Source: Bugula neritina (lineage: Eukaryota; Animalia; Bryozoa). From it: a stretch of DNA of 64,000 bases. The stretch is from positions 6,728,741-6,792,740 of the forward strand of contig OZ037768.1 of NCBI GenBank assembly GCA_964035545.1, written 5' to 3'. The position numbers and the translations under genes were made by a program. Below the pieces are notes generated by a model, which saw only the letters and a list, made by a program, of their open reading frames with translations, was not told where the DNA came from and made no database searches. Below, piece after piece: positions 7,618 to 40,300 of this stretch (within the stretch, counting starts at the first letter, position 1; the number at the start of each line of letters is the position of its first letter).

Positions 7618-10600
7618 TTAGAGTTTTTGCATAATGGCTGCGTTAAGAAGATCAGCTTCTTTTAGAGTAACGGTATCATCAGTTAATTGTCTACTTGGTA
7701 ATGTGGTAATAAGTGAGAAGGCAACTCCTGCATACTGAGGTCTGGAAGCAGCTATATGTCTCCTCACATCTCCTACAGTGTGTGTGTGGTTAAACTTACA
7801 GACCAACCTACAAATACATGGAGTTGTATAACAATACGATTGATGTTTGATGCATCGTCTGTATATTCTACCCTCCATACTTATGCAATATCAGAGGAGC
7901 TAGGGAACAGGCTTGGATCTATATAGTCAATGAAGACATGAAGCTGAGCTTGTTGTAACTATAATTTTGAAAAGCAATTAATTTCTAATCTCACATGATT
8001 ATTACACTTGAGGGTTTCAAAATGGTTCTCTCACAGCAAGCTAAGACACTTTGTAAATTGAGGCTTATAATTCCATTCATATTTGGCCAGCTTATTACAG
8101 TACAAAAGTGTAATAGATGCAATAATTAACCACATCTGCACTAAATATGCTAAGCCACTACTTAACCACTAATACTGTCCACCATTTGAAAAATTCTCAC
8201 CCATTCAGCAGTTACTGGTAAATGTTGAACAATTACAATGCAGTGGTGTTTCTTATAACATTGCCATGAAATTTCCAAGTATACAAGTACATTCTGTATA
8301 TTTACAGCTTTGACAGTGAGAATTACATGACCTATGCAATCTTTCTTAATGCTAGCAACATGGAGTTGTAAGCATTTAACAAAATTCTTTTTTACAAGAT
8401 ATAAATAAATATGATGCAATGTCTGCAGTTTTGAGGTGTAAATCATATCCTTGACTGGTGGATGAGTTTTATCAGGTAAAACTCCTACTCATGCTAGGTC
8501 AGGTTTCTATTGCAACTCATAAAACCCTACATTAAATTCGAACTATAATTATAGACTACGTAAGCAAGGACCAGGATATCACTTTACACAACTTTCTGAC
8601 TCAACTCTTCCCTAAACTTTTATTAATCTTTATTCAACAGATTTAACGCTGTTTTATTCAATAGCTGTCTATTTAATAAGTAATTATGAGTAACTGTTGG
8701 TTTCAATTTTAAAATACTGCAAGTTTCATAGTTAATTGTTTTAAAGTGAACTTGAAAAGCAATTTTAGGTTTTTTACATCATTAAAAATTTAGGGCAAAT
8801 TTTATTATTTCCACAGAGGCAGACAGCCAAGTTGTATATAACCAATACAGCTAGTCAATCTGTAGGATAACCAAGATGCACCAAGGACACAGTATGTTGG
8901 TTTTAGTCGTTATAGATTATCCTTGAAATTAGATTAGTCTGGTTAGTGCTTCCAGATCTAACAACAATTATGTAAGCAAATGTGAAATATCCAACACTTT
9001 AAATATTGATTGAGTGTTCACAGAAGAAATGCAAAAGTATTTCCATTAGACTCAATATGTATCACGTTATTATATGTAAAGCTTAAATCAGAAATATATT
9101 GTTACAGATTCTAGTGAAGTATGATTTGTGAACAGACCACTCGCACTATCTGCAGTTTATATAATTATGTTATAATTGTGTATAAAATAGAAATTTCTAC
9201 ACACCTGCTACCATCTGCCAGTCTGATCTGAATATTAGTGACTGGCTGTGAACTGTCAACGGTAACTGCCTGGGCAATGGCTGATGACACAATGGAGCTG
9301 GTGCTAGGCTAAAAACCACAATAAAATATATTTACCAACAGCTAACAGTACTAAGTAAACAGTAATGATACAGTCAACATTACTCTGTACAGAGTACTCG
9401 AAGTTTGTACAGAGTACTCAAAGTCTGTACAGAGTACTCAAAGTTTGTACAGAGTACTCGAAGTCTGTACAGAATACTCGAAGTCTGTACAGAGTACTCC
9501 AAGTCTGTACAGAGTACTCGAAGTCTTAAAGCAGTTGATATACTACATACACGTATAATATGTGGAAATTAGAAATGCATCAAACCTGGGTGGCTTCACT
9601 GCCTAATGTTTGTCCAGCTCCTGAAAATGACTTCACTTTATGCTGTTTAGGAGGCTCATAGTCTTCAGAACTGTGATCTTCCATGTCTAGGGCGACTTCA
9701 CCACCCTGGGCTAGTTGCAGAAGTTCATCTGGGATCTCCCTAAAACAAGGATCCATGTCTTGCAAACAGAACCCCCACCCCCATAGAAGAAATTTTGTAA
9801 AATTTTACATTAATATGGCTGAAAGCTTTCTTCTCTGTCATACCTTACAAACTTATGGTTGAAAATAAAATATGCCAACTCGTCAAACTAAACTCAATGA
9901 TCATCCTTTCGAAAGATATATTATAGCTTACACACAACCATACAACAGGCAATCCTCACTATGCCTCTTCCAGCTGAGAGATAATAACTCCCACACACTA
10001 AAATACTTAAAATAAATATAACCGAGAGTTGTTTTAGAGAAGAGTCTTACCCTCGACGAATAGAGTCTAGAAATTGCCGATTCTGTGGTTCGTGGAAGGA
10101 ACGGAGAGGTTCATCATTCACAGTGAATCCAGTTTTCCACAGTCGAAGTATGACCGCCATCTGATGACCAAATCAAAAGATAGTTTTAGCCAAAAGTAAA
10201 ACTTAGTTTTAACAACAGAAAGGGATGCAAGTTGATAAACCTCATTAGTACCAGTAGAAACAGGGTGGAACTTATCAGTTATAAGATAATGCAATGTAGA
10301 TATCTTAAATGACAAACACAAATTGAGTGGTTTTATGCAGGTAAAAAATTAGATTTAACAATATGTTTTGCCTTAAGTAGGATTTGGGCTATAGTGGTAT
10401 CAACCCTGAAAGCCGGAAATAGTGTCCAGTTATTTGCTGCATGACTGAATCAGCTAAGCTGGTAAGGTGTGGGTTCAAACCCTGTTGTGATCAATAGTTT
10501 TTTTCAGCAATTCAAGTAATTTATAAGTGGGACTAAATACCTACTAGAATTGTAATTGAGAGAAACAGCAAATGTGGCTCCATTTTTACAAACAGATAGC

Positions 10601-16133: not shown

Positions 16134-19100
16134 TTCTGTAACTTCGTTGTATTATAATAATTGTCTAATTACTGTAAATCCCTGAAGTATGCGCGCAATA
16201 TACTGGCGGGCTTTGCACAAATACCTTATTGTACCTCGCTGCTCACAAGTTCCTATCATATTTTTAATTATTATTTGCTTCCAACTCCAAGTGTTATACT
16301 CTTATTCAACCTTTTCCTACTTCCTAAAAAAAAAGAAAAGTCCAATTATGACTACTAGCTGTGGATATCTTGTTACATTTACTAAGTTATGTTCTTATAT
16401 TTTTCCATATATACTTAAGTCTCATATTTATTTGACTAAAAATATTTCTACGTGCTATTTATACCTGAGTACACAATATTTTACTAATGATATGCAATTG
16501 ATTGAGATGAAAGTTGTGCTCTCTTTAGTCTCCTGTAGTTGTTTACAGATGTTATAAAATGCACTGGCTGACCCATAATAAGTAACAGCCAGGGTGAAGT
16601 AACTGTAGATGGTTTTTCATTTGCTGTTTCATTATAGTAACCTGAGAAGTTGAATGCAAATTTACAATGAGTGAGATGTAGCAAATCACTCTAAACATTG
16701 AGCAAGAAATTACAAGCCCTGGCTAACTGCAAACATCTACTTGTCTGCATCTAACAGATCTTAAAGAGGCTGAGAAAGGAAAAAGTAAAACTGTTTAATC
16801 ATTAACAAACAACTATGCATTGATGAATTTCTTGTCACTTGTCACTCTGAGTTGATGATTCTATGTTATGTAGAAGAGTTTGTCAAACTAAGTTTCAAAC
16901 AAGACAAAATAAACCACATGTTTATACTTCTTCAATGCCTTGTTTGAATTTAGACTGCTATAAATATTATATTTCCTTTTCTTTTCTTGAAAGGTTGTGC
17001 CAAGTATATTGCTAAGATGTGACAAAAAAGGATGCAGGTATGCTGCCCAAAGTTACAAATAGCAAAAATTCTTAATTGATATTATTGAGTCTACTTTATT
17101 TTCTACTATTGAAATATTGCACAATTAGGTAATAACTGATACACATAGAAAAATTTGGTGATTCATTATATATGTTTTGGTTTCAAACTTTCACAGAAAT
17201 ACTGTAGTATGTGATTTATATTTTTCAATACCCCCGGAGCAGCCATGGCTACATCTTCTGTGTGTAGATGATGAATTACATTCTGGTAATTCTAGCACTA
17301 TATGCCTTGCAATGACAGCATAAATGTATTAAAATGCAAAGATTTTAGATTTGTTTGATGGCAATTTTTGGTGAAATAAAGTAGGAAATAGTGTATGACG
17401 TATCACAGACGTCTTAACTATGTCAAAGGGGTTGCAGAATTACAATTGCATCAACTTTAAAATAGCTTTGTCTGCCAATGTGAAAAAAGTAGCTTGAACA
17501 GACTTCAAATTTACAATATAAAATATTCATGAAATCTAAAAATTGTACATTTTACATTGATACAGCTTAGCTTTATTTATAAAATTCCAACCGCCATTAA
17601 TATGTTGAATGCATTATGCACACGCAGCTAAATAATCCAGCTTATAAAACTGCATTCCAAAACTTGAATGTAACTTGTTTGATGGTAAATTTATTAAAGT
17701 GATATTCTATGCTAGTGACATAATATATTATATATGAAAACATTTACAGTGAAGTATCGCGGCAATTGTATAATTTTTACTGTATTAGTGGTGATGTACA
17801 TATATTCATATGTTTATATGTCAGTTTTATATGTGAATAGACTCTTGTTTATAATAATATATTAATATATACACATATATTAATGTCATTTACTTGCATA
17901 AATTATGTAAAAGTGATCATTATTGATGCTTAATTTTTATTTAATATACAATAGATGTTACATGTCTCAAAACGCTTTGGCACATTACAATAACAAAGAA
18001 ATCTATCATTTCTTGTAGTTTATGTGAGACATATTGCAATCATTGCATGAAATAAAAATATCTTATTATGAAAGAGAAACATATAATAATATTTTTTATA
18101 AACTCTGTGGACAGCTTATGGATATCCAATAAAACGCTATACATGCTTTAAAAAAATTGATTTTCTTGTTCATAGTGTAAGTTTAAAATTAAGCAGCCAG
18201 TGTCACTTGGCATCTGTTTTAAAGGTTATTTGTTATTTTTTTCTAAACAAAAATTGAAAACATTATTTTTTTAAATATAAAACATATAATATCATATTAA
18301 GACTGCTTTTTATGGAATTGGTTACATTCATGAGTAGTAAAGAATTTTGATAGTCAACATAAGTTTATATGGTAATTTTTATCAATGAAACACTTTAAGC
18401 TGCAAAATATATTTTCATTTGATTTATGTACAATGATAAGGTAGCAGCACAGCAATAGTATATTGAAAATTCCTGAATTTGTGAACTATATACATGACGC
18501 GTTATGCGTTGCCATGACAAACATGCAAGAGCGAGAGTCTATAGCATAAGTTCTTGAAATTTAAAGGAGAATTTTAAGCATCGCCGCGTCAAAGGTTAGT
18601 TAAGTAAGTATTCAAAGATCAATAGCATTATGGGCGTGAATGACCCAGATTCTCCTATTGCTATTAGTACCACATAACAACTGGGTTTTTAGTCTTCAAA
18701 TTAAATATCATTAAAGTTGAGGGACTTGTTGGCAGATTGCTTTTAGTTTTTGCACCCACTTACAATTTACCAGTTTAACTGAATCTATTATAATAGATGC
18801 TTCATAATCAGTCTATATACGGCAATAATATTAGATGAGTTAGTGTGACACACTGACCATCTGAATCTCAAAGTCAAAGTCAATCTCAATCTGCACCAGT
18901 AACTAAAACTAAAAGTAGTTTATTATTTAAATTAGAAATATGAATCAATTTAAAACGTTGAAAATCACGATGAAGATAATCATAATCATAATCATAATGA
19001 TTAGTGACAATTAGTAACAAAGTCAAAATTTTAAACTCAAACTGCATGTTTATTATTAATTATATTTTAAGTTGACAACTAAATAAAATCTAAAAGTAAA

Positions 19101-19488: not shown

Positions 19489-22400
19489 ATGCCGAAGTTC
19501 AGCAAGACTGCTCCATCAGACAGCCATGTTGTTACTGAAGATCGATTCAAAATTCTTCCAGTTACAAGCAGAATCTCTATTAGAGACTTTGTGGCTAAAC
19601 ATGGAATCACTTTTGCTCCTGGCAGAGGTAAGCCTCACAGATTTTTTCCCCACACATGTGTACAAGCTCACAGTATAAGCAACAAGATATATAAGTTTTT
19701 GTTAAAATACAATAGTAATAGTAAATACTGCAAATGACAGTTGTTTAGCTGCTATATTACTAAAAAATTGTGGTTATAATTAGCTGATACAAAAAGATTA
19801 TTTATTATGTAAAAAAGATATATTGTGAAACAGGATTGCTGATAAAGTTCGATAAAGTAGTAGCAATCTATATTTTGTTTTTTACAAGTTTCAGCAATAA
19901 ATGTCTTCAAACTTCTAAAGCACAGTGATTTCTTGATCTCTGACAACAACAGTAATATAAGCGAAGCTTACTTATTGATTATTGACAAACACGAACTTCT
20001 TCTATAATAATACTTATTGTATTGTGTTATATAATATTGATTCAACGATGTATTTATTTTGTAATGCCAAATTAGAATGGAATTCATTAGAAAAGGAACA
20101 AGAATTTGTAATATTAATAAAACCAGCTTTTAGGGATGAGCAAGAAAGTTAAGCCGTTTCTCAATTTTGCAAACATTTTTGAAAATATTTACTAATCGAA
20201 GTATATATCCTAATTTTATTATGAAAATGTATTGCTTTAAACCAACACTACTTTTTGAAACAATTATTTTTTACTAATTATTGATTTTTAGAAGTTATTA
20301 AAGTATGGTTGTCAATGAAACTGTCATGCTAGCCTCATGCTATGCAATTCAAAAACTGTTAATTACAGATTTCTTCAGTTGCCAGTTTTAAGATATATGA
20401 AGGCTGTTGCACTGATGATACTATTTTTTAACTACCTGCTTTTTTTCTGCAGGCTTTTACCAACTTACTAAACCTGAGACCATCCAAGCTTACAAGGAGA
20501 TAGTTGCTGTGAGAGTGAGTGATGGAGCAAAGGTATGTATGCCATGCTGGCAATACTCTTTCACTTGTTTCACGGTACTACAACTATTTATAATAATAAA
20601 CTAAAGAATTTTGGTGCAGAAAGTAGTGTTTTTAAATTATTTGCAGGTAACTGGAGATGCTGTGAGAGATCTGTTGAAGATTCCTGATGGAGCTGCTAAG
20701 TTTAAGTACACTCAGGTGGATGACTTTGAAGTGTATGTGCAGAGTACATCATATAACAGAGTTCTAATGCCCGACACCAAGTTTCTATATGAAGTCACAC
20801 CTGGCGCTAGAGGTAGTAAATGTTGAATTTACATGGTTTGCTGTTATTGTGGCCATAAAACTTGCAATTAATCTCAAGCAGGTGTTTTATTCATTGTATT
20901 CTAAAGTATTACCTACTTTTTAGTAGATAAAAGCACTACTAGGATAAAAATTATGCTATTGTCTTAAGAGTGCACTGTTGTAATTTTAATTTATTGCTTC
21001 TGCACTTTTTTTGAACAAAAGACCTCTACAAAAACAGGCTTGTAGCTATGCAATGTTAATGCAACACCCTAAATGGTTTTTATGTAGGAGTATTTTCTCC
21101 TAAGAAAAGGAAAGTTGTCCTCAATGAGAAAAGAGGCACGGCACCTCCTCCTACCGTACCAGGCTCACCGATTGATCTCGTTTTCTCATTTGATACCACT
21201 GGCTCAATGTATTCTTGTCTGGATGAAGTGAGAAAGAATCTAACAACAATGATTGAGCGTATTCTCAAAGATATTCCTAACATACGTATTGCTGTATGTG
21301 TTTTTTTATTTGAATGAGACACTTCTATTTTGCAGATATGGTAGCAGAATGTTTTTTTTCTTTATAAAAAGTTTTTTTTTTGGAAAATTTTCGAAGTTTA
21401 TGAGACTGTTATTGTAAAGAGCCATTATGGTAGGGTATGTTAATGATATTTTTTAAAAAAATGTTTACTGAGTATTTGTGCCATTTATGTTTAGGTGTTT
21501 GCGCATGGGGATTATTGTGATAAAGACTCATCATATGTGACGAAGTTCATTGATTTTACGCAAGATACGAAGAAATTGGTTAGTTTTGTAAAGAATGTTA
21601 AAGGTACTGGAGGTGGTGATTTTGAAGAATGCTATGAGCTCGTCCTTCAGCAAGCCCGAACAGACCTCTCCTGGACTCCAGGTTTACTTATATCTTTTGT
21701 TGAACTATTATAATAAGCCAAACTTACTGTTGTTTCAGTTTTCTATTGTTTTTTTTTATTTACTTACAAGTGCTGTACTTTCTCACAGGAAGTCAAAGGG
21801 CAATGGTTATGATTGGTGACGCCATCCCGCATACAGTTTCTGACTACAAGCATATTATGTCTAACTACAAGTTTGTCAAGTCAGTTGTAGATTGGAGGAA
21901 AGAGTCGGATGAGCTCATTGGCATTGTAAGATTTTATTATAAAAATGTTGTGTCACTCATGTATTCATGTTCTCTTATTGTTAGCTCTGCAATGGGATTT
22001 TGCAGCTGATTTTCTGTTTACATGTTTCAGGGTTGTCGTGTTTATGCGGTCCAATGTAGTCCTGGTGGGTACCAGGAAAATGAATGTGCGAAGTTTTGGC
22101 AAGGTTTAGCTTTCAAAACTTATGGGCACCACCTGGAACTCAGTAACTTTAGCAATGTGTTTGATTTCATAATGGCCATTGCGTATAAGGAGCAAGGTGC
22201 TGAACAGTTTGAGGTTTGTGAACTGATAAACATTTATTATAACATTATAATATTTAATTTAAGAATGTTTTTATTTTCCTTGTCATGTTTCTACCCAAAT
22301 CATAAGATATATTAAAATAATAATGAATTGAAAATATTAACACAGTATAAGTAATAATTTAAAGAAAACTTATTTTAAGGATTAATGATTAGTAAAATAA

Positions 22401-23414
22401 GCTGAGAATTTCTAGTTTTAAAGATTATTTTTATAGATATTAGTAAGCAGTAAGAATTCTACCATTTTGCTTCTCTCACTAACAGCATTTAGTTACTAGT
22501 GGTTGTTTTATTCTTGTATAACATAGTGTCGTTTTAGTGACATGTAACTCTACGTAGGACTAGATTAAAATATAACCTAAAGCATTGTAATATATGGCGG
22601 TATATAATGTATATGAAGGCTTATCGCCAAGAGGTCATCAAAAGAACTCCAGGTGGTGAAGGAATGAATGCAGATCTGCATGCCTTATTCAATAGCCTTG
22701 CTGGTGATGACGACGATGATGACGGCCCTGCTGGTGCGGTGGCTGGGCCTTCTACTGCTACTGATCTATTTGCTGCAGCAGGTTGGAGTTCATAAATTAA
22801 TAAATAATTCTAATTTGTAACTAGTTGGTGTTTATATTAGTACATTTACATTAGACCCTTTAGTTACATTCATGAATTTAAACTGTAGTAATATTCACAA
22901 TCTAGTGTTTAGGATTAATGTTTTAATAATCCAATACAACTTAAAGCCTGTTGATCTCTGTTTATAATTTTATTTTTCAGTTCCTGTTACACCAGCTGGA
23001 AGTAAACGGAAAGCTGCTCCTGCTATTAGTACTGCATCTAAGAAAGTGAAACTTGCAGCAAAGAAAGCACCTGCTAAAAAAACGCCTGCTAAGAAGGCAC
23101 CTGCTAAGAAGGCACCTGCTAAGAAAGCACCTGCTAAAAAAGCACCTGCTAAGAAGGTACCTGCTAAAAAAGCACCTGCTAAGAAGGCACCAGCTAAGAG
23201 GGCACCAGCTAAGAAGACACCTGCTAAGAAAACACCTGTCAAGAAAGCACCTGCCAAAAAAGCACCTGCCAAGAAGGCACTTGCCAAGAAGGCACCCGCT
23301 AAGAAGACACCTGTTAAGAAGGCACCTGCAAAAAAGGCACCTGCCAAGAGGGTGCCTGTTAAGAAGACACCTGTCAAGAAGGCATCAGCTAAAAAAGTAG
23401 CTAGCAAAAAGTAA
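19489..23414 (+). CDS. Uncharacterised vWA-domain protein with NLSs and a histone H1-like (PAKK)n tail, 564 aa
   Basis: Coding exons 19489-19627, 20453-20532, 20647-20812, 21088-21293, 21495-21681, 21789-21925, 22031-22213, 22619-22781, 22981-23414 (1695 nt, open frame, GT-AG). vWA motifs [50 protein letters not shown] overlaps the stop codon (23413-23418). Confidence 0.88.
23058..23411 (+). repeat. Coding 15-bp tandem repeat, about 23 units of (A/T/V)P(A/V)KK
   Basis: Unit aagaaggcacctgct, varying mostly at synonymous positions, within the last exon of the vWA gene. Confidence 0.9.
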
Positions 23415-24553
23415 TAAAAGTACAATATTTATATCTTGGAGCATGTAGCAATTTTGATGTGTACTTCAATATGCTTAGATTCTATTTATGCTTTAAGCTT
23501 TGATAATATTATTCTATTTTGGGGTGATTCAAAGCAACTACTGCTATACAACACCAGTAATTTATTAACTATTTGGATCTAGATTTTACAATATTTATTC
23601 TAATCAAACAATGTTGTGGTATATTTAGATACACTTTATTTTTACCTACAATTGTTTTCAATGTGATGAAAAATAAGTTTTATAAAAATCAAACTTTTTG
23701 TTTATTGATTTGCTATAATTCTGTACTTTATATTTTTACTTGTAGTTTATTTTCCAAGAACTGTGAAATATGTTAAATTTGCACCTTTTTCTATGACTGT
23801 AGCGCTACAGATTTTTTTTCATAGCAATTTGTTCTATGTGAATATTTACATCTGTTAGCCTTGCCTTATTGAGTTTGTACTGTAGTGATAGTAAATAAAA
23901 TATGAGGTTAATTCAATACCATCAACTTTTTATTGCTTTTTATTGTACATCCAGCTAGCATCTATCTCAATACTGCTGGGCTGTATTTACTATTTAGAAT
24001 GTAATACAGGACAGTTTAAGGGTCATCTCCATAATTAAACCCCAAAATAATCATCTAGTCATGGAAAAGTGGGAATTTAAGTGCAAAATCTGTCAAAGAT
24101 GAGAAGTCAAAATTTAGTAAAAATGGTCATGTTGTGTGTTCTTAGTACTACAACTTTTGAAACATTGCTGGTGAAAAACTTGTTAACATTATTTTTCATT
24201 CAATTATTTCCAGTCAGCACAAATATGAATAATATAATATATATACCAGGACTGTTTTATGATGAAAGCTTTATTAATATTTTATTAAAAAAATAAACGT
24301 ATACTTGTAGATTATTTATGATTCTTCCAAGTACCATCAAAGTGAAAATAAATAAAAAATATCAAAATTTACATGTATATAATGGAATAAGCTGAATACA
24401 ACAGATATAACCAGCAGAGACACATCTACATATTATAATGACACAACTGAATTCCATTATAGAGTAGGCATAGCAAATAATAGGTACGGCGAAAAATTGT
24501 CTGCCATAAATAAACTAAAACAATACTTTATAATTAGGAGTCGGCCTGTAATA

Positions 24554-25933
24554 TTAACAATAAGGTTCGGTGTCTATGAATTGCATTGTCTTTGTCAATT
24601 CTTTCTGAGCAGTTAATGAGACGGTTTGTGCAGTCTTTGCCAATTCTTCCATTTCAGACTTGATATTAGAGATTGCCCATTCCATTGCTTGTCGGCCCTA
24701 CAAGGTGTTAAAAGTTGACACTAATTTTCGAAACTGAGATTTTACTCCAGTGAGCAACAACTATTGGCAAAAAACACAGCCAATGTATACAATGTAATAG
24801 ACTAAGTACCTTGCCGGCATTGTTGTCTATATTTCCCACAACTACTCCCTCAAGGTATCCACTCAGAGGAAGTCCTTTCACGTTTATTGAAGCTTCCTGT
24901 TTCAACAGTGTGCTGAAATGTAAATCTAAGTAGTTTCAGCAAAACCCAATAAACTGATACGGGCATAAATTATGTAAAGTGCAATACATTGGGTATTGGT
25001 CATATCATGAAATAAACAACTAAATATAAAACTTTTCCTTTGTAGAGTTAGGCCAAATTGACAATTCAGTTAAAAATTCGATAAAGTCAAGATACAATGT
25101 GACATCACATATACTCACTGGTTTTTGTTTGAGGGATGTGGACTGTAAACTAACGTTTCATCTATAGATAAGTAATCGTGAAGCGTAAGCTAAAAAGACA
25201 TTTATATAATATAATTCTCAATAAAAGAGTATGAAAAATTACCAAAGAGTGGATAAATCTATAGGTCATTACACGGGGTTTAATGCTACATGAAATTTGT
25301 TGAAATAGATAAGTAATAAAGAACCCCATTCAAAATGATACAATATTCGTTTAGTTTATTCATATTCTAGAAAAGATATTGCACTTACATTAGTTGTTCT
25401 GAGCTCTAACGTTTTACTTTTTGGATCTACCAAAGAAACTTCACTGCCAAAACACGTAGCATCTGTGCCCAGCATCTGCACATATTAACAAAAACATTTA
25501 AAATTGGTGCATTCAATAAAATAAATTTGGCTTACAACTTCCTAAACATGGTGGTAGGACTAAACCAAACTTCAATATTGCCAACAGTATCCAAATGTAT
25601 GTTAAGGGCACTTGCCGAGCATTGCTTACAGTGTGCACCCAAGATGGCAAAGACCATTTGGTAATCAGAAGTCTGTGTGACTCCAATCTTCCACGGCTGT
25701 CTATAGATCGGTTTAGCACATCTATACCAGTCACACCTGGGTTCATAGGATTAGGATATTTTCTCCATGCTGCTTTAGCCACAGTCTCCCATGGATGTCT
25801 AAACATTATCAAAACTACTAATATACAACTTGCTACGCTACTTTAAATGATTAAAAATAAGAAGTTACATTTTAAAATACTGAGAGGTACAATGAACATA
25901 CTCAAACGTGTGTTCTGATGTCCAAAGCTTCAT
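24554..25933 (-). CDS. PRELID3B: PRELI domain-containing protein 3 (slowmo/SLMO2 homolog, mitochondrial lipid transfer), 201 aa
   Basis: Exons 25902-25933, 25630-25798, 25389-25475, 25119-25189, 24810-24912, 24554-24697 (606 nt). [38 protein letters not shown]...[21 protein letters not shown]...[13 protein letters not shown] is the PRELID3/slowmo signature. The vertebrate A/B paralog distinction probably does not apply here. Confidence 0.93.
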
Positions 25934-28300: not shown

Positions 28301-31300
28301 ATGCCTATTGGTCCATACGGTGAGATTATAGGCACTACCAACTGCTTGGATGGGGTATCTGATGCTGTACTAAAGACCTACAGAACTAAAGTCAATGTCC
28401 CTAAAAACCCAAAAGTTGTCAGTGACGATGAACCCAAGCATAAACTCACTCCATCAGTATTTATGTTTCAAATGTCTATGGACACTGAAAAGAAGTTGTC
28501 CAATACACGAGACATGCGTCGACCTCAAAAGGTTGAACTCTTAGACATGGCAGAAACAACTCATCAAAGGGTATTAATTATACCACCAACTAAACATATT
28601 GACCTGATGAATTATTTTTTGTAATCACACATTTTCTTTGTCCTAAAATTTGATAGACCTACAATGTAATAATTTGACTTTACAATTACAACTTCAAAAT
28701 TTAAATAATTTGTTTTAAACTATATAATTTCTCTAAATTTTGAAGTTGTAATTATAAAATCAAAATATTATATTGTTTGTAAGTCTATCAAATTTTAAGA
28801 CAAAGTTCAATCAAGCAGTGTATTGTAATATCTAATCATAATTTATTGCAGTTCTCTCATGTATCAATTGATGAGCCACTCTTCCAGCCATTTCCCTCAG
28901 AAATATTCTTTCAGCGGTGTGAACCTTTCAAGACTCATGAGGTTCCTTTGATTTTGAGAAACAATGACAAAGTTAGTATTGATTTCTGTTATGTGAGATA
29001 TTTAAAATCATGTACTTTGAATATATATTTGCACATTTTGCTACTATGCCAAGGTTACTAAGCTTTATGTAGCTGTTTATATGATTTGATAATTATTTAG
29101 GTTCCTAGGCTGGTTAAGGTTGTCCAAGCAGACTCCCCATACTTTAAAATAGTGGCTCCTCTAAACTGTGGTGACAAAGTTGGTCCTGGTCTTCCAACAG
29201 TCTACAAAATACAGTTCACTCCTGAAGATAAAAGAGTAAGTATTAATTAAAATATTTTCTAATTACTAATGTGTGGCTAATGCAAAAGACTCAATGCATT
29301 TGCATACTGAAAAATTGAAGGATATTTTAAATTATTAGATGCATTAGAAAATCTATGACTAACAGTTTTTTTTAAATTAGTGTTAAAAATTGATTTATAC
29401 TGCAAAAGATTAGCACAGTGTGAGTTTACTAGCTTCAATCATACATGAATTTAGTTTAAAGCTATCACAAAGCTTTTCTGCTGTGTTTTACAAAAAGCTG
29501 TGATATCATAGTTTCATTTGATTCAATCATAGCAGACCCATGATTCTACTGTTGATTCTGTTGGTATGTTTAACTAATTAGGTTGGAATTTAGAAAATAA
29601 CAGTGTCTAACTAAAATATTGTAGTATATAAATTTAAAATTCGACTATGCTTGTATGAAATTAAGGAATAATAGCTATTGTTTAAACTTTATTTCAGGAT
29701 TACATTCATGAATTGGTGTGCATCACAGAAAGAGAAAAGTTTATTGTACCAGTCACAGCTATAGGATCTCGTGCTATGCTAGATTTTCCAGACAATGTCA
29801 ACTTTGAAGTTTGCCCTGTAAAGCACACATCTACAAAAACTTTGTTGGTTCGTAATGTTGGGGAAAGAGAAGCCAAGTTTACACTATCAGCTGAAAAGTA
29901 AGCATTTTGATTTATGCTGTGCAAATAGTTTTATTATTCTAGCCTGTTTTATGCATTTTAATATCCGAAACTTTACCTTCTTACTCAATTCATTTCTATC
30001 TTATGCGTGTTTTAGACCATTTTCTGTAAAGCCATCAAATGGAATTCTACCAGTAAACGAGAGCTTACAGATATCTATTGACTTCACACCCATCAAAACT
30101 GGTGACCATTACTCCGACTTAGAGTTGTGCTATGACACTGGGGAGACAATTCTGATAGAACTACATGGTGCTTCACAAGATGCAAATGTACGGTTAGATA
30201 AATCTTCAGTAAGAATAGAGAACACATATATCGGCATGGCTAAACAGAGAACTGTGACCTTGACTAACAGAACCAATGTCATCGCTCACTTCAGATGGAG
30301 CGAGTTTGCTACTCAAAGCTCTGAGGATATGCAGCGCTCAAGGTAATGATTCCCAAACATACATTCAATGTTTATCATTCAAAGGGTTGCAATCTAAGCA
30401 TCAGATACCTTATTAGGAAAACGCTTATGTTATCAGTTCTTTGTAAAATACAGTATCAGTTTTGATTCAAATATACAAGTAAACTGTTTTTGAAAGAGTA
30501 ATACTATTTTGTAAGATTTTGGCCATCATAAAAGTTTTTCTATTTTTATTGGTAAAAACAGCATGACAAAAACAAATGTTTGTCAGCAGTATTATAAAAT
30601 ATTTATTTATTGTTGGTGTGCATCAAGCTGTCACGTTTTACATTGCTGTCAATTTAACAAAATATTGGTAATCATGTTGTCATTTACTCAAAATATATTT
30701 ATACAAAGCAACTTGTATTTAAGTTATTTAAAAGAATATATGTTTCACTGGTTGCAGGTTTATCGGAGATCTAACAGATTCTGAAAAAATGGAAACGGAT
30801 CGGTTTCTGGAGGAGTGTATAACAGATCCGTCCTTGAGAGACAAAATGTCGATTATTAACCGAACATTTCAGAATAGGAAAAGAGTATGTAAATTGTCTA
30901 CTGTTTTTAGAATATTGGAATTCTGTAGTCATGTAAATTTGTTACGCTTTTTGTTTTTGGTAATCTAAGGATTTGCCTGTTTTGTGTGTATTTTTATCTT
31001 TGTCTCTTAGAAGTTAGAACACACTTACAGTATGCGAAATGCTATGTCAATCGAAAACCGTGGATTTCAAGTGTTTTAATAATGCAATTAAGATTGCTGC
31101 GACATTTGTAGCATTTTTCAATTTAAGATAATTCAATTGTAATATTTTTATTGGGAAGTTTGATAATTCAAAGTAAATACATAGTAGAACCGTATCTTAT
31201 TACTCTTATGTATTACCCTAATTCAAGTGTCTTGTGTTCTTATTGTACAGTAATACAATAATAATAAACAGTTTTATTTTAAATAACAAACACAAACTAT

Positions 31301-34300
31301 AAATAGTGTTTAAATGCCACGGTTTTTTACAGAATGTTGCAGACAACAAAATGCTTTTCACCGATGATGTGGTGAAGATTGACCCTGCAGAGGGCGATAT
31401 ATGGCCAAACTCTTCAGCGGAAATCACTGTCATATTCAAGCCTGATAAAGCGGAGGTTTATAACAGGACAGCTTTTTGTGATGTCACTGGCAGAGAGTCT
31501 AGACTGCCACTCAAGGTCACCGGGTTGGGTATTGGACCAAAGGTAATTGTGTTGCAGTACAATACTCTGATCAAACTATTGCATTATGTGTTATTGGATT
31601 AATGATTACGTAGATTTTCTGATAAGTGGCAAATAGAGTAGTCACTGTTTAGATCATCAGTTGTACCGCATGATTACACCATTAATTGCTGCTTGCCATT
31701 TAACTTAAATTATTTTGCTGAACAGGATTTATACCACGGACATTATTTTAAAAGCCATTAGAACAGCATGTTATAGTTGTGTTGTTCACTCAAAGAAATA
31801 TAGTTTTTTTAAAACCAATGTTTTTTTAGGTTCAATTTTCTTGTGATGTGCTGGACATGGGTAATATATTTGTGGGCTCGACGCATGTCTATGAGATTGT
31901 GATGGCAAACAAAGGAGACATTGATGCCATCTACACCCTCATCCCGTCCAAGACAATGTTTGGCAAATGCTTTTCCTTTAACCCTGCTGAGAGTATCCTA
32001 ATGCCTGAGGCCCACCAAGCTATTCAAGTCATGTTCTCCAGTCAAACACTGGGCAACTTTGAAGAGGAGTTTGAGTTCCAAGTTGATGGAGCTCCTGAGA
32101 AAGTCAAAGTGAAGTTTATGTACGTATTCACCATCTGTCAGTGTTTGTAGCTTGTTGGTTAGAAACTTTATTTATAAGTAAAGATTTTATATATGATCCT
32201 CATGCAGATATTTCTAGGCATTATTATAAGAATTATTTTATTAATTTATAATTTTTTTGACAAAGTAAAAATTACTTTATGGTAGAATGGCTTATTAAAG
32301 TCAATAATTTGTTTAAATTACAGGCTTTTAAGACTTAAAAATGTTTTGTGTTATAAGAGAGCTTCAAACCTATGATCCAGCCTTTTTGTATATTGTGGTG
32401 GCTCGTGGAGCTACCAGCAACACAATACGCAAGGTTGCGTATTGACCCGGAACAATGTATTAGCCAATTAACTAAGCTGTTGGATAAGTAATAGTAGCCG
32501 CTTCGCGCTACTAGCTCAGTTGAGGATAGTGCTGTAAACTAAATAGACGTGCGTATCATTACTGTTGTACATTGGATTTTATTATGTATTCTTGTATTAA
32601 ATATAACGATATCTACTCGACTTAACTGGTGAAGTTTCTCTAGTGTTAAATAGACTCTCTTGGTGGCACATCAACCCTAAATCTGAAAATTATAACAGTG
32701 GTGGCAGCGGTGGGATAGTGTATATCAAAGATGGAGACTGAAAACGCTGGAATGCAACCACCCCCAGTAGAAGGTGAGCGTAGAAATGCTGTTAACCCTG
32801 TAAACTATGAAGGAGAAGAAGCTTATAGACATTACTTGAAAGCTCCCACCTTTACTGGGTCGGAAGATGTCGAACAATTCATACAAGAATTTAGAGAAGT
32901 AATGGAAGTTGCTCAATGGCCGCATAGAGTGGCCCTCATTCAGTTGCGGAGAGCAGTGACGGAGCAAGCCAAGCCGTACGGAGTGGGAACGGACGTAAAC
33001 GGCATACTGGCTGCGCTGCGGGCCCGTTTTGGCACCTCCGTCATAGACGCTAGGACCAAGCTGGAGAGATTGTGCCGCACCCCGCGGACCTCGCTGCAAG
33101 AACATGCCGCGACGGTGAAGAAGCTGGCGCAGATTGCATATAGCGATCTGCCAGCACAACACCAAGAGCGTTACACCTATGACGCCTTTGTCCAGTCCCT
33201 AAACGACCTGGGCCTAGACCATCACCTACGAGCTAAAGGGATAACCAGAATGGAGGATGCCCTGAAGGCTGGAGAAGCTTACCTGTTGGCTACCCAAATG
33301 CATCGAGCACAGCGGAACCCACCAGTAGTTGGAGTCAGCGCTGCTCGGGCTACGACAGGCTCCGAAGCCCTCCCGCTGGAAGCCGAAGTGGACCGTATGG
33401 TAGAGATGCTGGGACAATTGGTAACCATTCTGGCTGGTGCTGGCCCCGGTCAGGCCTTGCGGATGCCCCCAACACCTGTGGGGCAAGGCTGGAGTAGCGC
33501 TGATCAGGACCAGAGACAGGAAGGACGACCCCAATACCAGGGGGCGTTAAACTGTCACGGCCCGCGGACATTCTCCCTCCCCGCGGGCCGCAACTAAAGG
33601 AGTATGGTGGAACACGCCGTCGGCTGTCCGTACGGACGCGGCGGAACATTCTACCCGAGTGGCAGGTACCACGCAGGACTAGTAGGCCCGCACAACGGGC
33701 CAGTACCTTTTCCCTGCCACTCGCTAACCGGTTTCACCGGTTACCTCGGGAGGAGGAGCCCGCCACTGAAATGGAGCCAGAAGGCCCAGTGGAGAGGCCC
33801 AAACCCCGCCGGCACCAACCTCGCCGCCGGAAGCCCCGTAAACCACGGGTGAAACCCCCGCCGTCCTGTCAAACCAGGACAGCACATGCGGGGGGGGGTG
33901 AAAGTACAACCACATGGAGAGAGCTATTTCCTACCCGGAAAGGTGGCCGGCAACGCCGTCACTTTCCTGCTCGACTCCGGTTGTACTACCAACCTTCTCA
34001 GCCGTAGAGTCTTTGAGGCACTGCCCCGCCGGGACAGGGATAGAGTACGACCGTATACTGGAGAACATGGCACCCTGGCAGACGGGTCATGTATCCCCTT
34101 TTATGGTATTATCGAGCTCCCTGGGCGTGTCCGAGATCAGGCTGTACAGGAGACCTTTATCATAGGTCAACTGGAAGAAGATGCTATCCTCGGAATGCCC
34201 TTCTTGAAGCAGCACCAGTGCCGAATAGATTTCAGTAAGTCGGTGGTGCTGATGGGCGGGCGAGAACTCGCCTGTGTGGATAAGTTTGGGCGTCCCCTGG

Positions 34301-37300
34301 TGGGCGGTGTTCAGGTAGTTCGAAACTGCACCGTACCCGGACGCTCCAGAGCTACTATCCACTGCCGAGTGAACAGCAACCGGATAGCCAGGCTCGGGGT
34401 CGTTGAAAGCGCGCACGAAAAGATCCAACTCGCCAGTAGTTTAAACCGACTAACTGAGCGAGGGGAGGTCTTAGTGCAGTGCGTCAACCCCTTTACCGAG
34501 CCCATTGAGCTCCCAGCTGGGTCAATGCTGGGCCGGTTCCATTCCGTCCAGGAAGAGGACGTGGGCCCGTCGCTGGGTGACGCGACGGAGGCACCCCCTC
34601 GACACCCTATTCAGGGACGAGGGGCAGTCCCAACACATCTCCGGGAGTTATACGAAACAGCCAGTGGCGGCTGCGCGAGTAACAGAGAACGCCAAGCTAT
34701 GGCCAAGTTACTACGCGACTACGGTGATGTGTTCAGTAGCGGAGAGCATGACGTGGGACTGACTGGAATTGTCAGACACGAAATACCGCTGACTGCAGGG
34801 ACAGTCCCTGTCCGGCAACCCACGCGCAGGCTGGGGCCGGAGAAAGAGAAGGAGGTTAGCCGACAAGTACGGGATCTTCTGGACCGGGGACTGATAGAGC
34901 CCGCCCATAGTGCGTGGAGCTCGCCAGTCGTACTGGTCCGGAAGAAAGACGGCAGTTGGCGGTTCTGTGTGGACTACCGCAAACTCAATAGCGTAACCAT
35001 ACAGGACGCCTACCCTCTACCTCGTATTGACGAGTCATTGGACGCCCTAGCCGGCAGCAAGTACTTCAGTACGTTAGACTTGCTAAGCGGCTATTGGCAG
35101 GTTCCTCTGAGTCCCGACGCCCAAGAGAAAGCGGCGTTTATCACACGGGACGGTTTGTGGAAGTGGAAGGTGCTGCCCTTCGGGTTAACCTCCGCCCCAG
35201 CCACCTTCCAGAGGCTGATGGAACAAGTCCTTAGCGGACTCCATTGGAAGACACTGCTGGTCTACCTCGATGATGTCATCGTAATCTCTCCAGACTTCGA
35301 GACACATGTCAGTCGTCTGCAGGAGGTTTTCGAGAGACTCCGAGGTGCCGGTCTTAAGCTCAAACCTTCCAAGTGCGCTCTGTTGCAGCCGGAGGTCAAG
35401 TACCTGGGGCACGTTGTCGGTCGAAACGGCGTGGCAACGGATCCCGAAAAGGTACGGGCAGTAGAAGACTGGGTCACCCCCCAAGACTTGACCGGACTCC
35501 GGGCTTTCTTGGGGCTGGTAGGGTATTACAGGCAATACATGCCAGACTTTGCGGGCATAGCCCAGCCGTTAAACCGGCTTACCGCAAAGGGAGTGACGTG
35601 GCAGTGGACTCCAGTCGAACAAGAAGCGTTCGACCGCCTCAAGGGCTGCCTCCTAACGGCGCCCATCTTGGCCTACCCAGACCCCACTCTGGAGTACATC
35701 CTAGACACGGACGCCAGTGACCAGAATGTTGGCGCTGTGCTGTCACAAGTGCAGGAAGGCCGAGAAGTAGTAGTAGCCTACTACAGCAAATCTCTCTCTC
35801 CCGCTGAACGAAATTACTGCACTACCCGCAAGGAGCTGCTGGCAGTAATCAAGTCAGTGAAGCACTTCAGACCATACCTATATGGCAGGAAGTTCCGGCT
35901 GCGTACGGATCATGCCTCGCTGATCTGGTTGTGCAGGAGAGCAGAGCCCTCCAGTCAGGTCGCCCGGTGGCTCGAAATCCTAGCTGAATTCTCGTACCGG
36001 ATCGAACACCGACCGGGCAAGAGACACAGCAATGCGGATGGGTTGAGTCGCCGACCTGACGGAGGTTGCAAACAGTGTCTCAACATCGAGAGGAGGGATG
36101 GAGGTCCCCCACGATGCGAGTTGGAGACGCTGGCTCATCACGGAGCACCGTTTGACTGGGATCAAGGTCAACTCAGGCAAAGAGTTGATGAGTCCCCGGA
36201 GGATGTACAAAACCTCCGCGCCAACCCTGTACTGGCCGGTAATGTTCGAGAGCTGAAGAAGCTCTAAGAGGAGCTGCCTGGAGTCGTGGCAGACATCTAC
36301 CGGGCCAAAAGGGAAGGGCGACGACCCAGCGAGGAACGCATACGACAGGGATGCGCCGAGTTCCGGCTATACTGTCAGCGTTGGGACTCGCTGCGGATCG
36401 GGCAGGATGGGTTGCTAACCATCTCTCTAGCTGCCAGCGGCAGACACCCGGAAAGGAAGAGGGTAGTCTGCCCCACAGCCATCCGCCGTGAGTTGATTTG
36501 GGATACTCACAAGCAGGCCCACGCAGGGGTCAAGCGAGTGATATCCAAATTACGACTCCGGTGGTATTGGCCGCAGATGGAGCGTGACGTCCGGCTCAGA
36601 GTCAAACAGTGTGAGATCTGCCAGGCCAGTAAGCATAGCCGCCCCCCTGGTGAAGCAGGACGGCGGAGGCTATATGCTGGTAGGCCCTGGCAAGTAGTCG
36701 CTGTAGACCTGGTCGGACCCATGCCCCTGACCCCCAGAGGCAATAATTGGATCCTAGTACTAACCGACCACTTTACTAGGTGGGCGGATGCTCTGGCTAT
36801 CCCAGATGCATCAGCCCCAACAGTGGCCAGGGCACTAGACCAACATGTATTCTGTTATTTTGGGCTTCCCGAACAGATACACTCTGATCAAGGCGCTCAA
36901 TTCCAGTCTCAACTGATGAGCGACCTTTGCCACCTCTGGGGAGTAAATCAGAGCAGGACCACCCCCTACCACCCTCAAGGTAACGGGGTGGTGGAGCGCA
37001 ACAACCGGATGCTAGGTGATGCGCTCCGGAGTCTCCTCCTTGGACGAGGTCAAGAGGAATGGGATACGGTGTTGCCGCAAGTCATGCGTGCATACCGTAG
37101 CACCCCACACACCAGTACTGGTGAGACCCCAAACCTCTTGATGCTCGGGAGAGAGACTCGTGTCCCTGACCATCTCACCTATCACGTTCCAGAGCAGGAT
37201 AACTCAGTCCACGAGTATGCCAGTGAACTAGTGGAACGGATGAAGGCCGCACACGAGATACTGCGTCAACAGCAGTGGAAGGTGCGGCACGAAGATTCCG

Positions 37301-40300
37301 ATGAACCACCCCTCTATCAAAGAGGAGATAAGGTGTGGATGGTCAATTACCGTAGGCGCCGCGGACAGGCTGATAAGCTGAAGCCTAAGTTCGTAGGCCC
37401 CTACGTGGTCGTCGAGGCTATGCCCAATCATACGTACAAGATTGAGCGCTCAGGACAGGTGTCTATCCAGAATGAGTCTCGCTTGAAACCGTATTGGGCT
37501 AGCCCTGACGGAGTGGGAGAAGCCCCCCCGTTGTTAGAGCCCAGGAGGCAGACAACGACGCGCGGGCGACGGCGGCATGGACCTGAATACGAAGTGGTCA
37601 TACCGCGGGAGGAAAACTTGGTGAGAGAGGAGCGGCAGCTTTTGTCAACAGAAGCGTGTCCGCCACCGCCAAGTCTAATTCCATCACTTCCAGAAACCGA
37701 GCCGGCTCCGGAAGTGCAAACCCCCACGGAGGGAGGGGCTCCATCCGGAGAACAAGAAGAGGTGACCACTAACGGTGAAGTAGAGACGCCATTTGAGGCC
37801 CCTACTAACGAACCGGCAAGCGTGTCACCCCCCTTAGAAAGGGGACAGCGTACGAGGAAACCCCCACCGTATTTGAAAGACTTCATATGTGACTGCATCA
37901 GAAGCGGCGCATATGAAAGTCTAGGGGAAAACCGTACGATAAAATGTTGGAGTTGTGAACCCCACGCAAATATCAACTTTTGCGAGGGCGGAATAGTGGG
38001 AGGAATTAATGCGCGCAAAGCAAATAGTTCCGACCTCGTGCCTCAGAAACGATGCTCAGCCTTTTCTTATGCTGACATCGCCAAAGGCAGACGTATCCCA
38101 CAACCAGCTCCAACCTTACCAAGAACGTTGAGTATGGACATTAATACCGAGTTCCCAGGTAAGCCAGTATAAGTCTTGTATTCCTATTCATGGAAACGGG
38201 CTCGATGCCAGTAAATTCTGAACTAATTCAGCAGATTGAATCAGAATTACTGGGAACCACGTTTCATGTGAATGACGATGAAGACACTGTAATGGCCGAC
38301 GGTCTATTAGACCTGGAGCTAGACACTGTTCTTGGTCAGTCCACACATGATGCATCAGTTCCTCGAGTGCATTCCAAAAGCTGTGACTCTCAGGCTAGCA
38401 ACGGTCGACAGTCACTAGAATTATGTTGTAAAGATCCACCGCGATCTAACAATAATTCTACTTTTGTAGACACACTCGCACCCGTCTCTACGGACATGCC
38501 TTCTCTAGAGATGGCATGGGACCCAGAGCCGGCCCCAACAACTCCTACCACCAGGCAACTACCACCCCAGTTGGAAGCAACCTCCAACTGGATTACCCCT
38601 GCCACAGAGAGGGAAATCAGGACCCATCAAGGAGGTGAGAGTAATCGTGAATGCAACCTCTGCCAGCAGCGATTCACAACCCACCGCAGACTAAAGGTGC
38701 ACTTGCCGCAGCACTACATCACCACTTTCTGCCCTTGCGGAGAATATAGCTATAACCGTGATTACCTACTGCGGCACCAACGTACTATGCAGTGCTATCA
38801 AGGACATGTCTATGAAGTAGACGAATCATCATATCCTGCCTTTCTCAACGCCATTAAACCACTCATCACTGACTCAGCTCGGCTATCTCGCCTGGAGCAA
38901 GGCTTCCCTTCCCCGCGACCCATCATCTCTGGAGCCACAGATAAACCTACACAGTCTGCTAACTCTCCACCTCACAGTCCTATACGCATGCCGCATACCT
39001 TTCCTCGTGTTGTACTACAGAGAGTAGACACAAATGCGTATACACTCCCTCCTCCTCTTCCATCCTCAGAGCGGAAACGACACAGGCAACCAACTTCCTC
39101 TCGCTCGTCCCCCTGGGCCCGTAACCTACGTGAGGTAGAAGCTAGGGCGCATGACTTGGAGCAAGAAGTCTACAGGCTGGCCCCACGAATACAGGCAGCC
39201 TCCAGTGAACTCAAATACTTACAGGAGTCGATTAAACGCATGAAGCGTGCGGCCCGCAATCAACTCGAGTCTACCTACCACTCCCTACTACTCATTCCCC
39301 TACCTCTCTGTGGCATTCCCTACCGTAATGGTGGCACGTACTCTACATGTAGATAGGACCTTCTCTTGCTTATTACTTAGTGCACGATATATATATCTGT
39401 ATATTTTTTACCAGTTGTTGTTTTTTTTATATACTTTTATGCTGTTCTCTTACCCCCCAACGAAGTATACGTTTTTTTATGTGAATCTTATTTTATCAGA
39501 AAGTGGGCTTTCTGCTGGAGGGGGCAGTGTGGTGGCTCGTGGAGCTACCAGCAACACAATACGCAAGGTTGCGTATTGACCCGGAACAATGTATTAGCCA
39601 ATTAACTAAGCTGTTGGATAAGTAATAGTAGCCGCTTCGCGCTACTAGCTCAGTTGAGGATAGTGCTGTAAACTAAATAGACGTGCGTATCATTACTGTT
39701 GTACATTGGATTTTATTATGTATTCTTGTATTAAATATAACGATATCTACTCGACTTAACTGGTGAAGTTTCTCTAGTGTTAAATAGACTCTCTTGGTGG
39801 CACATCAACCCTAAATCTGAAAATTATAACAATATTCTTACATTGAGTAAAACATCAAAGTTTTTATTCTAATTACTTGTTCGTGTTTATATTTGATTTT
39901 GGCTGTCACCAACAGTCCATGCGAGTTAACTTTCCTTACTTCATCATAAATCATTTACATGGTTTCATTGTTATTTTTCTAGTGGCTGCGTGATAGGTCC
40001 AACCTTTCACTTCAATGTGAACAAAATAAAGTTTGGTACCGTTTCATATGGCTTCCTCAACTCACTGCAATGCACACTCTCCAACACAGCCTTGGTTCCA
40101 ATGACATTCAATCTGCGTGTTCCGGGTGATGGACTTGCTGAAAGTTCTTCCGCCAGTGAAATGGAAAGCACTTTCAGTGAAGCTGGCTCTTTGATTCCCA
40201 AAGAATTTGAAATCACACCTTCAAGAGGTAGGCATCCATTAAAACATCTTTGTAAAATATTATTTATTATTTGCATTATAATCAATTGTTCATCAACACA

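Follow-up and report, generated by a model that had tools for sequence, protein, structure and literature searches.

A single-copy Bugula neritina member of the X-vWA protein family with a lysine-rich repeat tail in place of a terminal domain

In a 64,000-nucleotide stretch of the Bugula neritina genome (assembly GCA_964035545.1, contig OZ037768.1, positions 6,728,741 to 6,792,740; hereafter the window, in which all positions are counted), a forward-strand gene at 19489-23414 codes for a protein with a vWA domain and a long lysine-rich tail. With confidence only somewhat above even, we explain it as a whole as the single-copy Bugula member of an old family, here called X-vWA, which has lost its terminal domain and amplified its basic linker, and whose product would be a nuclear protein held on nucleic acid. 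The core of the family is a vWA domain with a full metal site, joined to one or two copies of an unnamed beta-rich module of about 115 residues, to which we give the name X. The gene is an entry to this large and unstudied family, and its Bugula form amounts to a natural experiment, in which a histone-like polycation built by tandem amplification of a 15-nt unit appears to have taken the place of a terminal domain.

A nine-exon gene conserved between two Bugula assemblies

Database searches were made exon by exon, and questions on the full-length protein were addressed via public orthologues (KAF6031341.1, KAF6019781.1 and others). The gene has nine exons, every donor being GT and every acceptor AG. 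Joined, they give an uninterrupted reading frame of 564 codons, which bears out the 564-aa spliced product proposed in the initial annotation of this DNA. Exon 1 (19489..19627), with the start ATG and the donor GTAAGC, begins the X domain and is 98.6% identical to draft B. neritina contigs; the domain continues through exon 2 (20453..20532), which carries a GFYQLTKPE motif, and exon 3 (20647..20812), which carries an FVQSTSYNR...FLYE motif. A basic linker and then the first strand and helix of the vWA domain are encoded by exon 4 (21088..21293), after which come exon 5 (21495..21681) with AHGDY, GTGGGD and ECYEL, exon 6 (21789..21925) with IGDAIPH, exon 7 (22031..22213) with the C-terminal half of the domain, and exon 8 (22619..22781), which follows a weak acceptor (ATGAAG) and holds the last vWA helices and the acidic run GDDDDDDG (22703-22726). 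Exon 9 (22981..23414) comprises a basic patch of 16 residues, KRK...KKVK (23004-23051), the array of PAKK pentapeptides and the stop codon TAA (23412-23414), and the stop codon is overlapped by an AATAAA signal (23413-23418). By reading, the hydrophilic N-terminus has no evident signal peptide, in agreement with the initial annotation.

For comparison we used a second assembly, the draft B. neritina genome GCA_010799875.2, in which the gene lies on two contigs (L045 and L046). Exons 1-8 of the window were 97.1% identical to this assembly without a gap, whereas the introns were 90.7% identical with many gaps. The exon differences were distributed as 6, 3 and 28 over the first, second and third codon positions, and 26 of the codon differences were synonymous against 8 non-synonymous. 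The contrast between exon and intron identity, the synonymous excess and the third-position bias together indicate clear purifying selection. The draft assembly retains every splice site, the weak exon-8 acceptor and that of exon 9 among them, and the junction 22781>22981, drawn in the initial annotation, is the same in the GenBank models KAF6019781.1 and KAF6031341.1. Judged from these alignments, the gene is real and conserved in Bugula, and its exon 8-9 junction is a predicted one. Beyond the species, metagenome contigs contain exon-level homologues 74-82% identical, in which the boundaries of exons 5-7 are retained, and in a contig of a more distant bugulid-like origin exon 7 is 85% identical.

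The GenBank models start six residues earlier (MCEVPK), via an upstream mini-exon. We consider the ATG at 19489 the better start here, because the match of window positions 18168-18229 to contig L046 (2900-3016) stops short of the mini-exon. Cnidarian orthologues likewise start with MPPK..., as does the product of exon 1 in Bugula.

When exons 3, 4, 5 and 7 were queried singly, each matched this locus alone in the 216-Mb genome. Both assemblies also share the gene order around it, with a UBX/SEP gene upstream and a PRELI gene followed by a HYDIN/CFAP-like gene downstream. A transposon origin of the Bugula gene was therefore rejected, and its single copy, its introns and its shared UBX/SEP and PRELI neighbours mark it as a host gene rather than a mobile element.

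A vWA domain with a complete metal site

The vWA domain carries the residues of a metal-ion-dependent adhesion site (MIDAS): the motif D-T-T-G-S (21192..21206), which has Thr for the first Ser, the T before GGGD in exon 5 and the D of IGDA in exon 6. In an alignment of 61 relatives, the D, T, T and S of the first motif and the D of IGDA are invariant and the T before GGGD is nearly so. Further residues specific to this vWA clade, namely FDTTGSM, AHGDY, ECYEL, IGDxxPH and W...E, all occur in the window product and do not vary across the family alignment. The initial annotation had described an intracellular-looking vWA domain with a MIDAS-like site and had listed DTTGS, GGGD, GDA and the acidic run GDDDDDDG; all of these are where it had placed them, the intracellular look of the domain is borne out, and the putative metal site proves complete and shared by the family.

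The AlphaFold2 (AF2) model of KAF6031341.1, 97% identical to the window product, places alternating strands and helices at residues 163-400 with a predicted local distance difference test score (pLDDT) above 90. A Foldseek search with this part of the model returned at least 500 vWA matches in the PDB, the best being integrin beta I-like domains (E 7e-10, probability 1.0). As modelled, the alpha/beta Rossmann-like fold of the vWA superfamily is present. Profile matches are weaker at the level of single exons: Pfam VWA_4 gave collinear matches of 18.8 bits (exon 4, profile positions 2-31) and 13.4 bits, below its cut-off of 27, and the Branchiostoma orthologue (P0022) reached 30.9 bits with the same model. 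Two distant relatives (P0028 and P0037) matched PF00092 with 36.7 and 31.4 bits (cut-off 23.8), and KAF6031341.1 and KAF6019781.1 both carry a precomputed PF25106 assignment.

The same genome also contains a separate, expanded VWA_4 family, with at least 22 exon-level matches that are much stronger than those of the gene studied here. Its members lie in tandem clusters at C3:13.457-13.509 Mb and at C8:9.557, 12.949-12.966 and 13.153 Mb, and at C37:26491.

The N-terminal X domain

The X domain spans residues 14-127 (19528..20808, exons 1-3), and a local hidden Markov model (HMM) matched it with E 2e-53. In the AF2 model of the 97%-identical orthologue it is a beta-rich module with a pLDDT of 88 and a predicted template modelling score of 0.81. 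No Pfam model matched the X domain of the Bugula exons or of the orthologues; a match of Pfam DUF7632 on exon 3 (E 0.2) was set aside as chance, being repeated by no orthologue X domain. Structural searches were similarly poor in relatives: Foldseek of X against the PDB gave none at E <= 0.001, and an exhaustive structural scan had a best Z of 4.7. In the ESM Atlas, X was matched with TM-scores of 0.72-0.78, by parts of vWA proteins alone, from tailed phages, from giant viruses (with RING fingers) and from Actinomycetota. X also matches phrog_26613, a family of no assigned function. Searches of the PDB by sequence gave no match, whether the query was exon 4 or a profile of exon 5, of X, of the whole family or of the PF19239-like domain.

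The initial annotation had spoken simply of an N-terminal globular domain. A conserved module that is predicted to fold is indeed found there, but it is not unique to this position, as X normally flanks the vWA domain on both sides.

An X-vWA family from phages to invertebrates

A profile of the exon-5 vWA segment retrieved 934 cluster representatives, and the X domain together with this vWA clade spans bacteria, phages, giant viruses, fungi and many invertebrates. Full-length orthologues, which are 45-51% identical across X and vWA, were found in Lingula, Branchiostoma, corals, sea anemones (Nematostella), an octocoral, Owenia, a copepod, a mite and a mucoromycote fungus; none of the relatives listed here comes from a standard model animal. 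The X HMM matched 151 fetched relatives, 57 of them twice, and the usual eukaryotic layout is X, a low-complexity basic linker, vWA and a second X. Bacterial and phage members are about 355 aa long, have the order vWA then X, and some add a WGR domain. Literature searches on the X-vWA family found no paper.

Several variants of these layouts were seen. Four metagenome proteins (P0245, P0279, P0280 and P0282) combine the bacterial vWA-X order with a C-terminal WGR domain (PF05406, 68 bits); JGI annotates them as "predicted DNA-binding WGR domain protein". Other fusions of this vWA clade carry a ubiquitin-conjugating domain with WD40 repeats (P0094, 1520 aa), SAM domains (P0274) or, in giant viruses, RING fingers. 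In Branchiostoma, the C-terminal X has been lost independently in one paralogue (P0167/P0022), whose end is an Arg/Ser/Pro-rich tail, and the neighbouring paralogue Hypp4268 retains X.

The neighbours of bacterial and phage members are varied, including RtcA, RNA ligase 2 (phage) and, in others, an integrase, a ParA-like gene and an efflux pump; no recurrent partner was found in the neighbourhoods examined, and no match to a defence system was returned by PADLOC. On bacterial metagenome contigs (L035/L036/L037), the vWA-X gene lies directly downstream of RtcA (RNA 3'-phosphate cyclase) and is followed by a gene for a 474-aa protein without a family match and then by one for a DUF1822 protein. 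The homologue in Rhizobium phage RHph_I1_18 stands among RNA ligase 2, thymidylate synthase and DHFR.

These surroundings bear on one alternative, namely that the Bugula protein acts on RNA, or in the nucleolus or ribosome, with the tail and X binding RNA and the vWA domain recruiting a partner in RNA processing or repair. It would account for the position of the bacterial gene directly after RtcA and of the phage homologue near RNA ligase 2, and for a weak likeness between part of X and S4-type RNA-binding modules (Z 3.3-3.6, and rows of the ESM Atlas search). Lysine-rich tails also target nucleoli. However, the RtcA and RNA ligase neighbourhoods are not recurrent, Z values below 5 are within noise, and the fusions with WGR and GIY-YIG-like domains speak for DNA at least as strongly, so that we regard an RNA-directed role as quite improbable.

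Probable loss of a terminal domain and amplification of a basic linker

In a maximum-likelihood tree of the vWA domain (IQ-TREE), Bugula grouped with Lingula, Lottia, Patella and a partial sequence from Owenia with a support of 100/96, apart from the cnidarian, amphioxus and Owenia proteins of the canonical X-vWA-X type. After the vWA domain, these nearest relatives have a lysine-rich linker of 50-100 residues with KKRK-type patches and TPKK/APKK motifs, and the linker is followed by a domain of about 160 residues that matches PF19239 (GIY_YIG_domain) in 9 of 15 proteins, with a best E of 5e-7. Haliotis has a second lysine-rich stretch at its extreme end. The lysine-rich segment of Bugula stands directly after the vWA domain, as it does in this lophotrochozoan clade.

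Neither terminal domain was found in Bugula. C-terminal X queries matched exons 1-3 only within the window, and the X profile likewise matched only these across the whole 216-Mb genome. For the PF19239-type domain, a query with the Lingula C-terminus gave no match in the window, and the genome had none at E <= 0.01, although such a domain could be missed if it were split over short exons. As far as these searches reach, the Bugula protein is without the defining C-terminal feature of both nearest sub-families, the second X and the PF19239 domain. The simplest history that we infer is that the terminal domain was lost and that the basic linker already present grew, in frame, through tandem duplication of a 15-nt unit.

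The tail itself is a tandem array at 23061..23397 (forward strand), in which Tandem Repeats Finder recognized a 15-nt unit in 22.5 copies coding for (A/T/V)P(A/V)K(K/R). Read in register, it consists of 24 pentapeptides, of which 14 are exact PAKK, 20 fit P[AV]K[KR] and exactly five are TP[AV]K; the initial annotation, which had counted about 23 pentapeptides and five TP(A/V)K sites, was close in the first number and right in the second. The tail of 143 aa is composed of 36% K, 29% A and 16% P (81% together) and has a net charge of +54, where the remainder of the protein has −5. In the AF2 model it is disordered, with a pLDDT of about 32.

Profile matches on the tail need to be read with its composition in mind. 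Pfam HC2 matched with 49 bits, above its 40-bit cut-off, and covers the low-complexity array only; in NCBIfam the Rv3852-family and H1-like matches were all under their cut-offs; and Extensin models matched as well, the Hc2, H1-like and Extensin matches all being compositional. In a metagenome scan the tail exon drew unrelated low-complexity proteins only. An origin of the repeat from H1, or from a repeat shared with other loci, was rejected: the K/A/P-like loci elsewhere in the genome consist of other repeats (GPLKK among them), and none looked H1-like. Two loci drawn by the tail query and unrelated to the gene are a 251-aa open reading frame of GPLKK repeats at C3:16885857 (L051) and a long microsatellite of the 15-nt type at C1:33878372 (L055), which is readable in several frames.

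Weighing the tail and the 3' end of the gene

Could the tail be a low-complexity expansion by slippage that is merely tolerated, without a chromatin role, in a protein that acts through its X-vWA core as it does elsewhere? The tail is specific to this lineage, its repeat number varies by about one unit between Bugula sequences, the C-terminal parts of the family are highly variable, and the predicted disorder and the compositional nature of the profile matches agree with such an expansion. Against it, third-position bias was found both between the repeat units and between the assemblies: the differences among the 24 units were distributed as 10, 12 and 33 over the three codon positions, with lysine replaced by arginine alone, and those between the window tail and draft contig L046 as 4, 10 and 26, with 22 synonymous and 14 non-synonymous changes. 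Moreover, every close relative has a lysine-rich segment at this position, and together with the second stretch in Haliotis this suggests that the basic character is selected. A tolerated tail is thus, in our judgement, rather unlikely.

Several observations weigh against the favoured explanation of a nuclear protein held on nucleic acid by its tail. The repeat can be read without a stop in two of the three forward frames and on the reverse strand too, and because of the two forward frames an open frame alone is weak coding evidence for the array. In both draft contigs the A-runs of the tail exon contain single-base indels (L045 at about 8250-8630, L046 at about 8190-8490), so that the PAKK reading shifts frame; these indels explain the truncation of model KAF6031341.1 and the mini-intron forced into KAF6019781.1. 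They are probably homopolymer errors, because one frame or another carries the PAKK reading along the whole length and up to the same stop codon, and possibly real frameshifts. On the side of function, the neighbourhoods of the bacterial genes are inconsistent, and function is not readable from them; the nucleic-acid theme is suggestive and not established, because the fusion partners are mixed (WGR, GIY-YIG-like, RING, UBC, SAM and WD40); and the proposed nuclear localization signals (NLSs) and DNA binding are read from motifs and composition only.

The open frames and the frame-breaking indels would also fit a wrong 3' end of the gene model, with exon 8 as the last coding exon and the PAKK array as a non-coding minisatellite or part of the 3' untranslated region. 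Read-through of exon 8 gives ...AAAGWSS and a stop at 22793-22795. This alternative is very improbable in view of the evidence around exon 9. Its acceptor, with a long pyrimidine tract, fits the reading phase and is retained between the assemblies; the 23 unique codons ahead of the repeat differ at a single base between them; the third-position bias within the array is in exactly the PAKK frame; and the stop codon overlaps the AATAAA signal. In addition, all relatives run on for 70-240 aa past the point that corresponds to the end of exon 8, the two GenBank models share the junction, and KAF6019781.1 includes the entire tail, shorter by about one repeat unit.

A possible nuclear, nucleic-acid-held protein

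Two basic patches may direct the protein to the nucleus: the NLS-like SPKKRKV (21096..21116, forward strand), which contains an SPxK site and lies in the linker between X and vWA, and the bipartite-type patch in exon 9 (23004-23051), both of which had been pointed out in the initial annotation and are present. Of the 70 relatives with an N-terminal X, 55 have K[KR]x[KR]-type clusters in the linker between X and vWA, and mollusc-type proteins have basic clusters directly after the vWA domain. Homologues keep one of the two features on which the proposal had dwelt: NLS-like patches recur in eukaryotic relatives, which makes nuclear targeting of the Bugula protein plausible, but the PAKK tail is specific to its lineage, the relatives having K-rich linkers.

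With the favoured explanation of a nuclear, nucleic-acid-held protein, the basic patches SPKKRKV and KRK...KKVK would bring about nuclear entry, the polycationic tail would hold the protein on nucleic acid by charge, by analogy with the tails of H1, Hc2 and HupB, and the MIDAS face of the vWA domain and the X domain would bind a partner. The S/TPxK sites number six in total, five TP[AV]K in the tail and the SPKK of the linker, and phospho-regulation at these sites, with release by a cyclin-dependent kinase (CDK), is possible.

A further-reaching reading is that vWA-X is an ancient nucleic-acid-associated ligand-binding unit, with X as a new fold whose ligand is related to nucleic acids, that the Bugula linker independently became a tail condensing DNA in the manner of H1, and that the protein is a metal-dependent adaptor tethered to chromatin and switched by CDK phosphorylation of the TPxK sites. 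In that reading, the unit has repeatedly been fused to parts directed to DNA or RNA (WGR in bacteria, GIY-YIG-like domains in molluscs and brachiopods). We consider this whole chain doubtful.

If the tail does tether the protein to chromatin, this would be a hint of a nucleic-acid role for the family as a whole. The Bugula gene also shows a route by which a short basic linker may become a tail of the DNA-binding type. Nonetheless, the X domain, which has no solved structural relative, and the breadth of the family are more valuable leads than the tail variant itself.

Surroundings of the gene in the window

Downstream of the X-vWA gene, a PRELI/MSF1-like gene occupies 25513-25812 on the reverse strand, and a ciliary gene with Ig repeats of the HYDIN/CFAP65 type occupies 29855-32150 on the forward strand; the order is the same in both draft contigs. 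A G+C-rich block at 32000-39500, with 50-57% G+C compared with about 33% around it, interrupts the region of the HYDIN/CFAP-like gene.

Comparison with known proteins

The likeness to chromatin proteins concerns the tail alone. The Bugula tail resembles the C-terminal domain of H1, Hc2 and the tails of the HupB/Rv3852 type in its Lys/Ala/Pro composition, its S/TPxK sites and its predicted disorder. The winged-helix domain of H1 (Pfam Linker_histone) had no match in any exon or in the orthologues, so that the Bugula protein is not a linker histone. On these comparisons the likeness to H1, Hc2 and HU is compositional and not one of family membership, and a HU fold is absent.

The core of the protein, in contrast, has relatives in all the groups described above. 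Bacterial and phage vWA-X proteins (phrog_26613; QIG70700.1 of RHph_I1_18; members from Patescibacteria and Thioploca) are about 37-41% identical to it and match the X HMM with E 1e-30 or better; they differ in having vWA first and then X, with no N-terminal X and no basic linker or tail, and some carry WGR. Among the lophotrochozoan K-rich/PF19239 proteins (Lingula LOC106169974, Lottia LOTGIDRAFT_168082 and LOTGIDRAFT_174892, and those of Patella, Haliotis and Capitella), that of Lingula retains the N-terminal X; the C-terminal PF19239 domain is present in these proteins and lacking in Bugula, whose basic segment is a regular 15-nt tandem array. The eukaryotic X-vWA-X proteins (Nematostella LOC5507494, Montipora, Porites, Acropora, Branchiostoma Hypp4268 and Owenia) are 44-48% identical over about 380-450 aligned positions and share the N-terminal X, the basic NLS-like linker and a vWA domain with FDTTGSM, AHGDY, ECYEL and IGDxxPH, and they end in a second X where Bugula ends in the PAKK array.

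The initial annotation knew of no described protein with this architecture. The same 564-aa architecture had in fact already been deposited, and its core belongs to a large family, but it is uncharacterised and unstudied. The deposited form is KAF6019781.1 (A0A7J7J272_BUGNE; EB796_021906, a hypothetical "VWFA domain-containing protein" of 564 aa), which is 95.7% identical to the window product and represents the same gene in another genome of the B. neritina complex; the second B. neritina entry, KAF6031341.1, is 96.8% identical. KAF6019781.1 differs from the window product in several A/T/V swaps in the tail and in a 1-nt draft indel that its model skips, and it shares with it the X domain, the linker, the vWA domain, the acidic run, the PAKK tail and the exon 8-9 junction.

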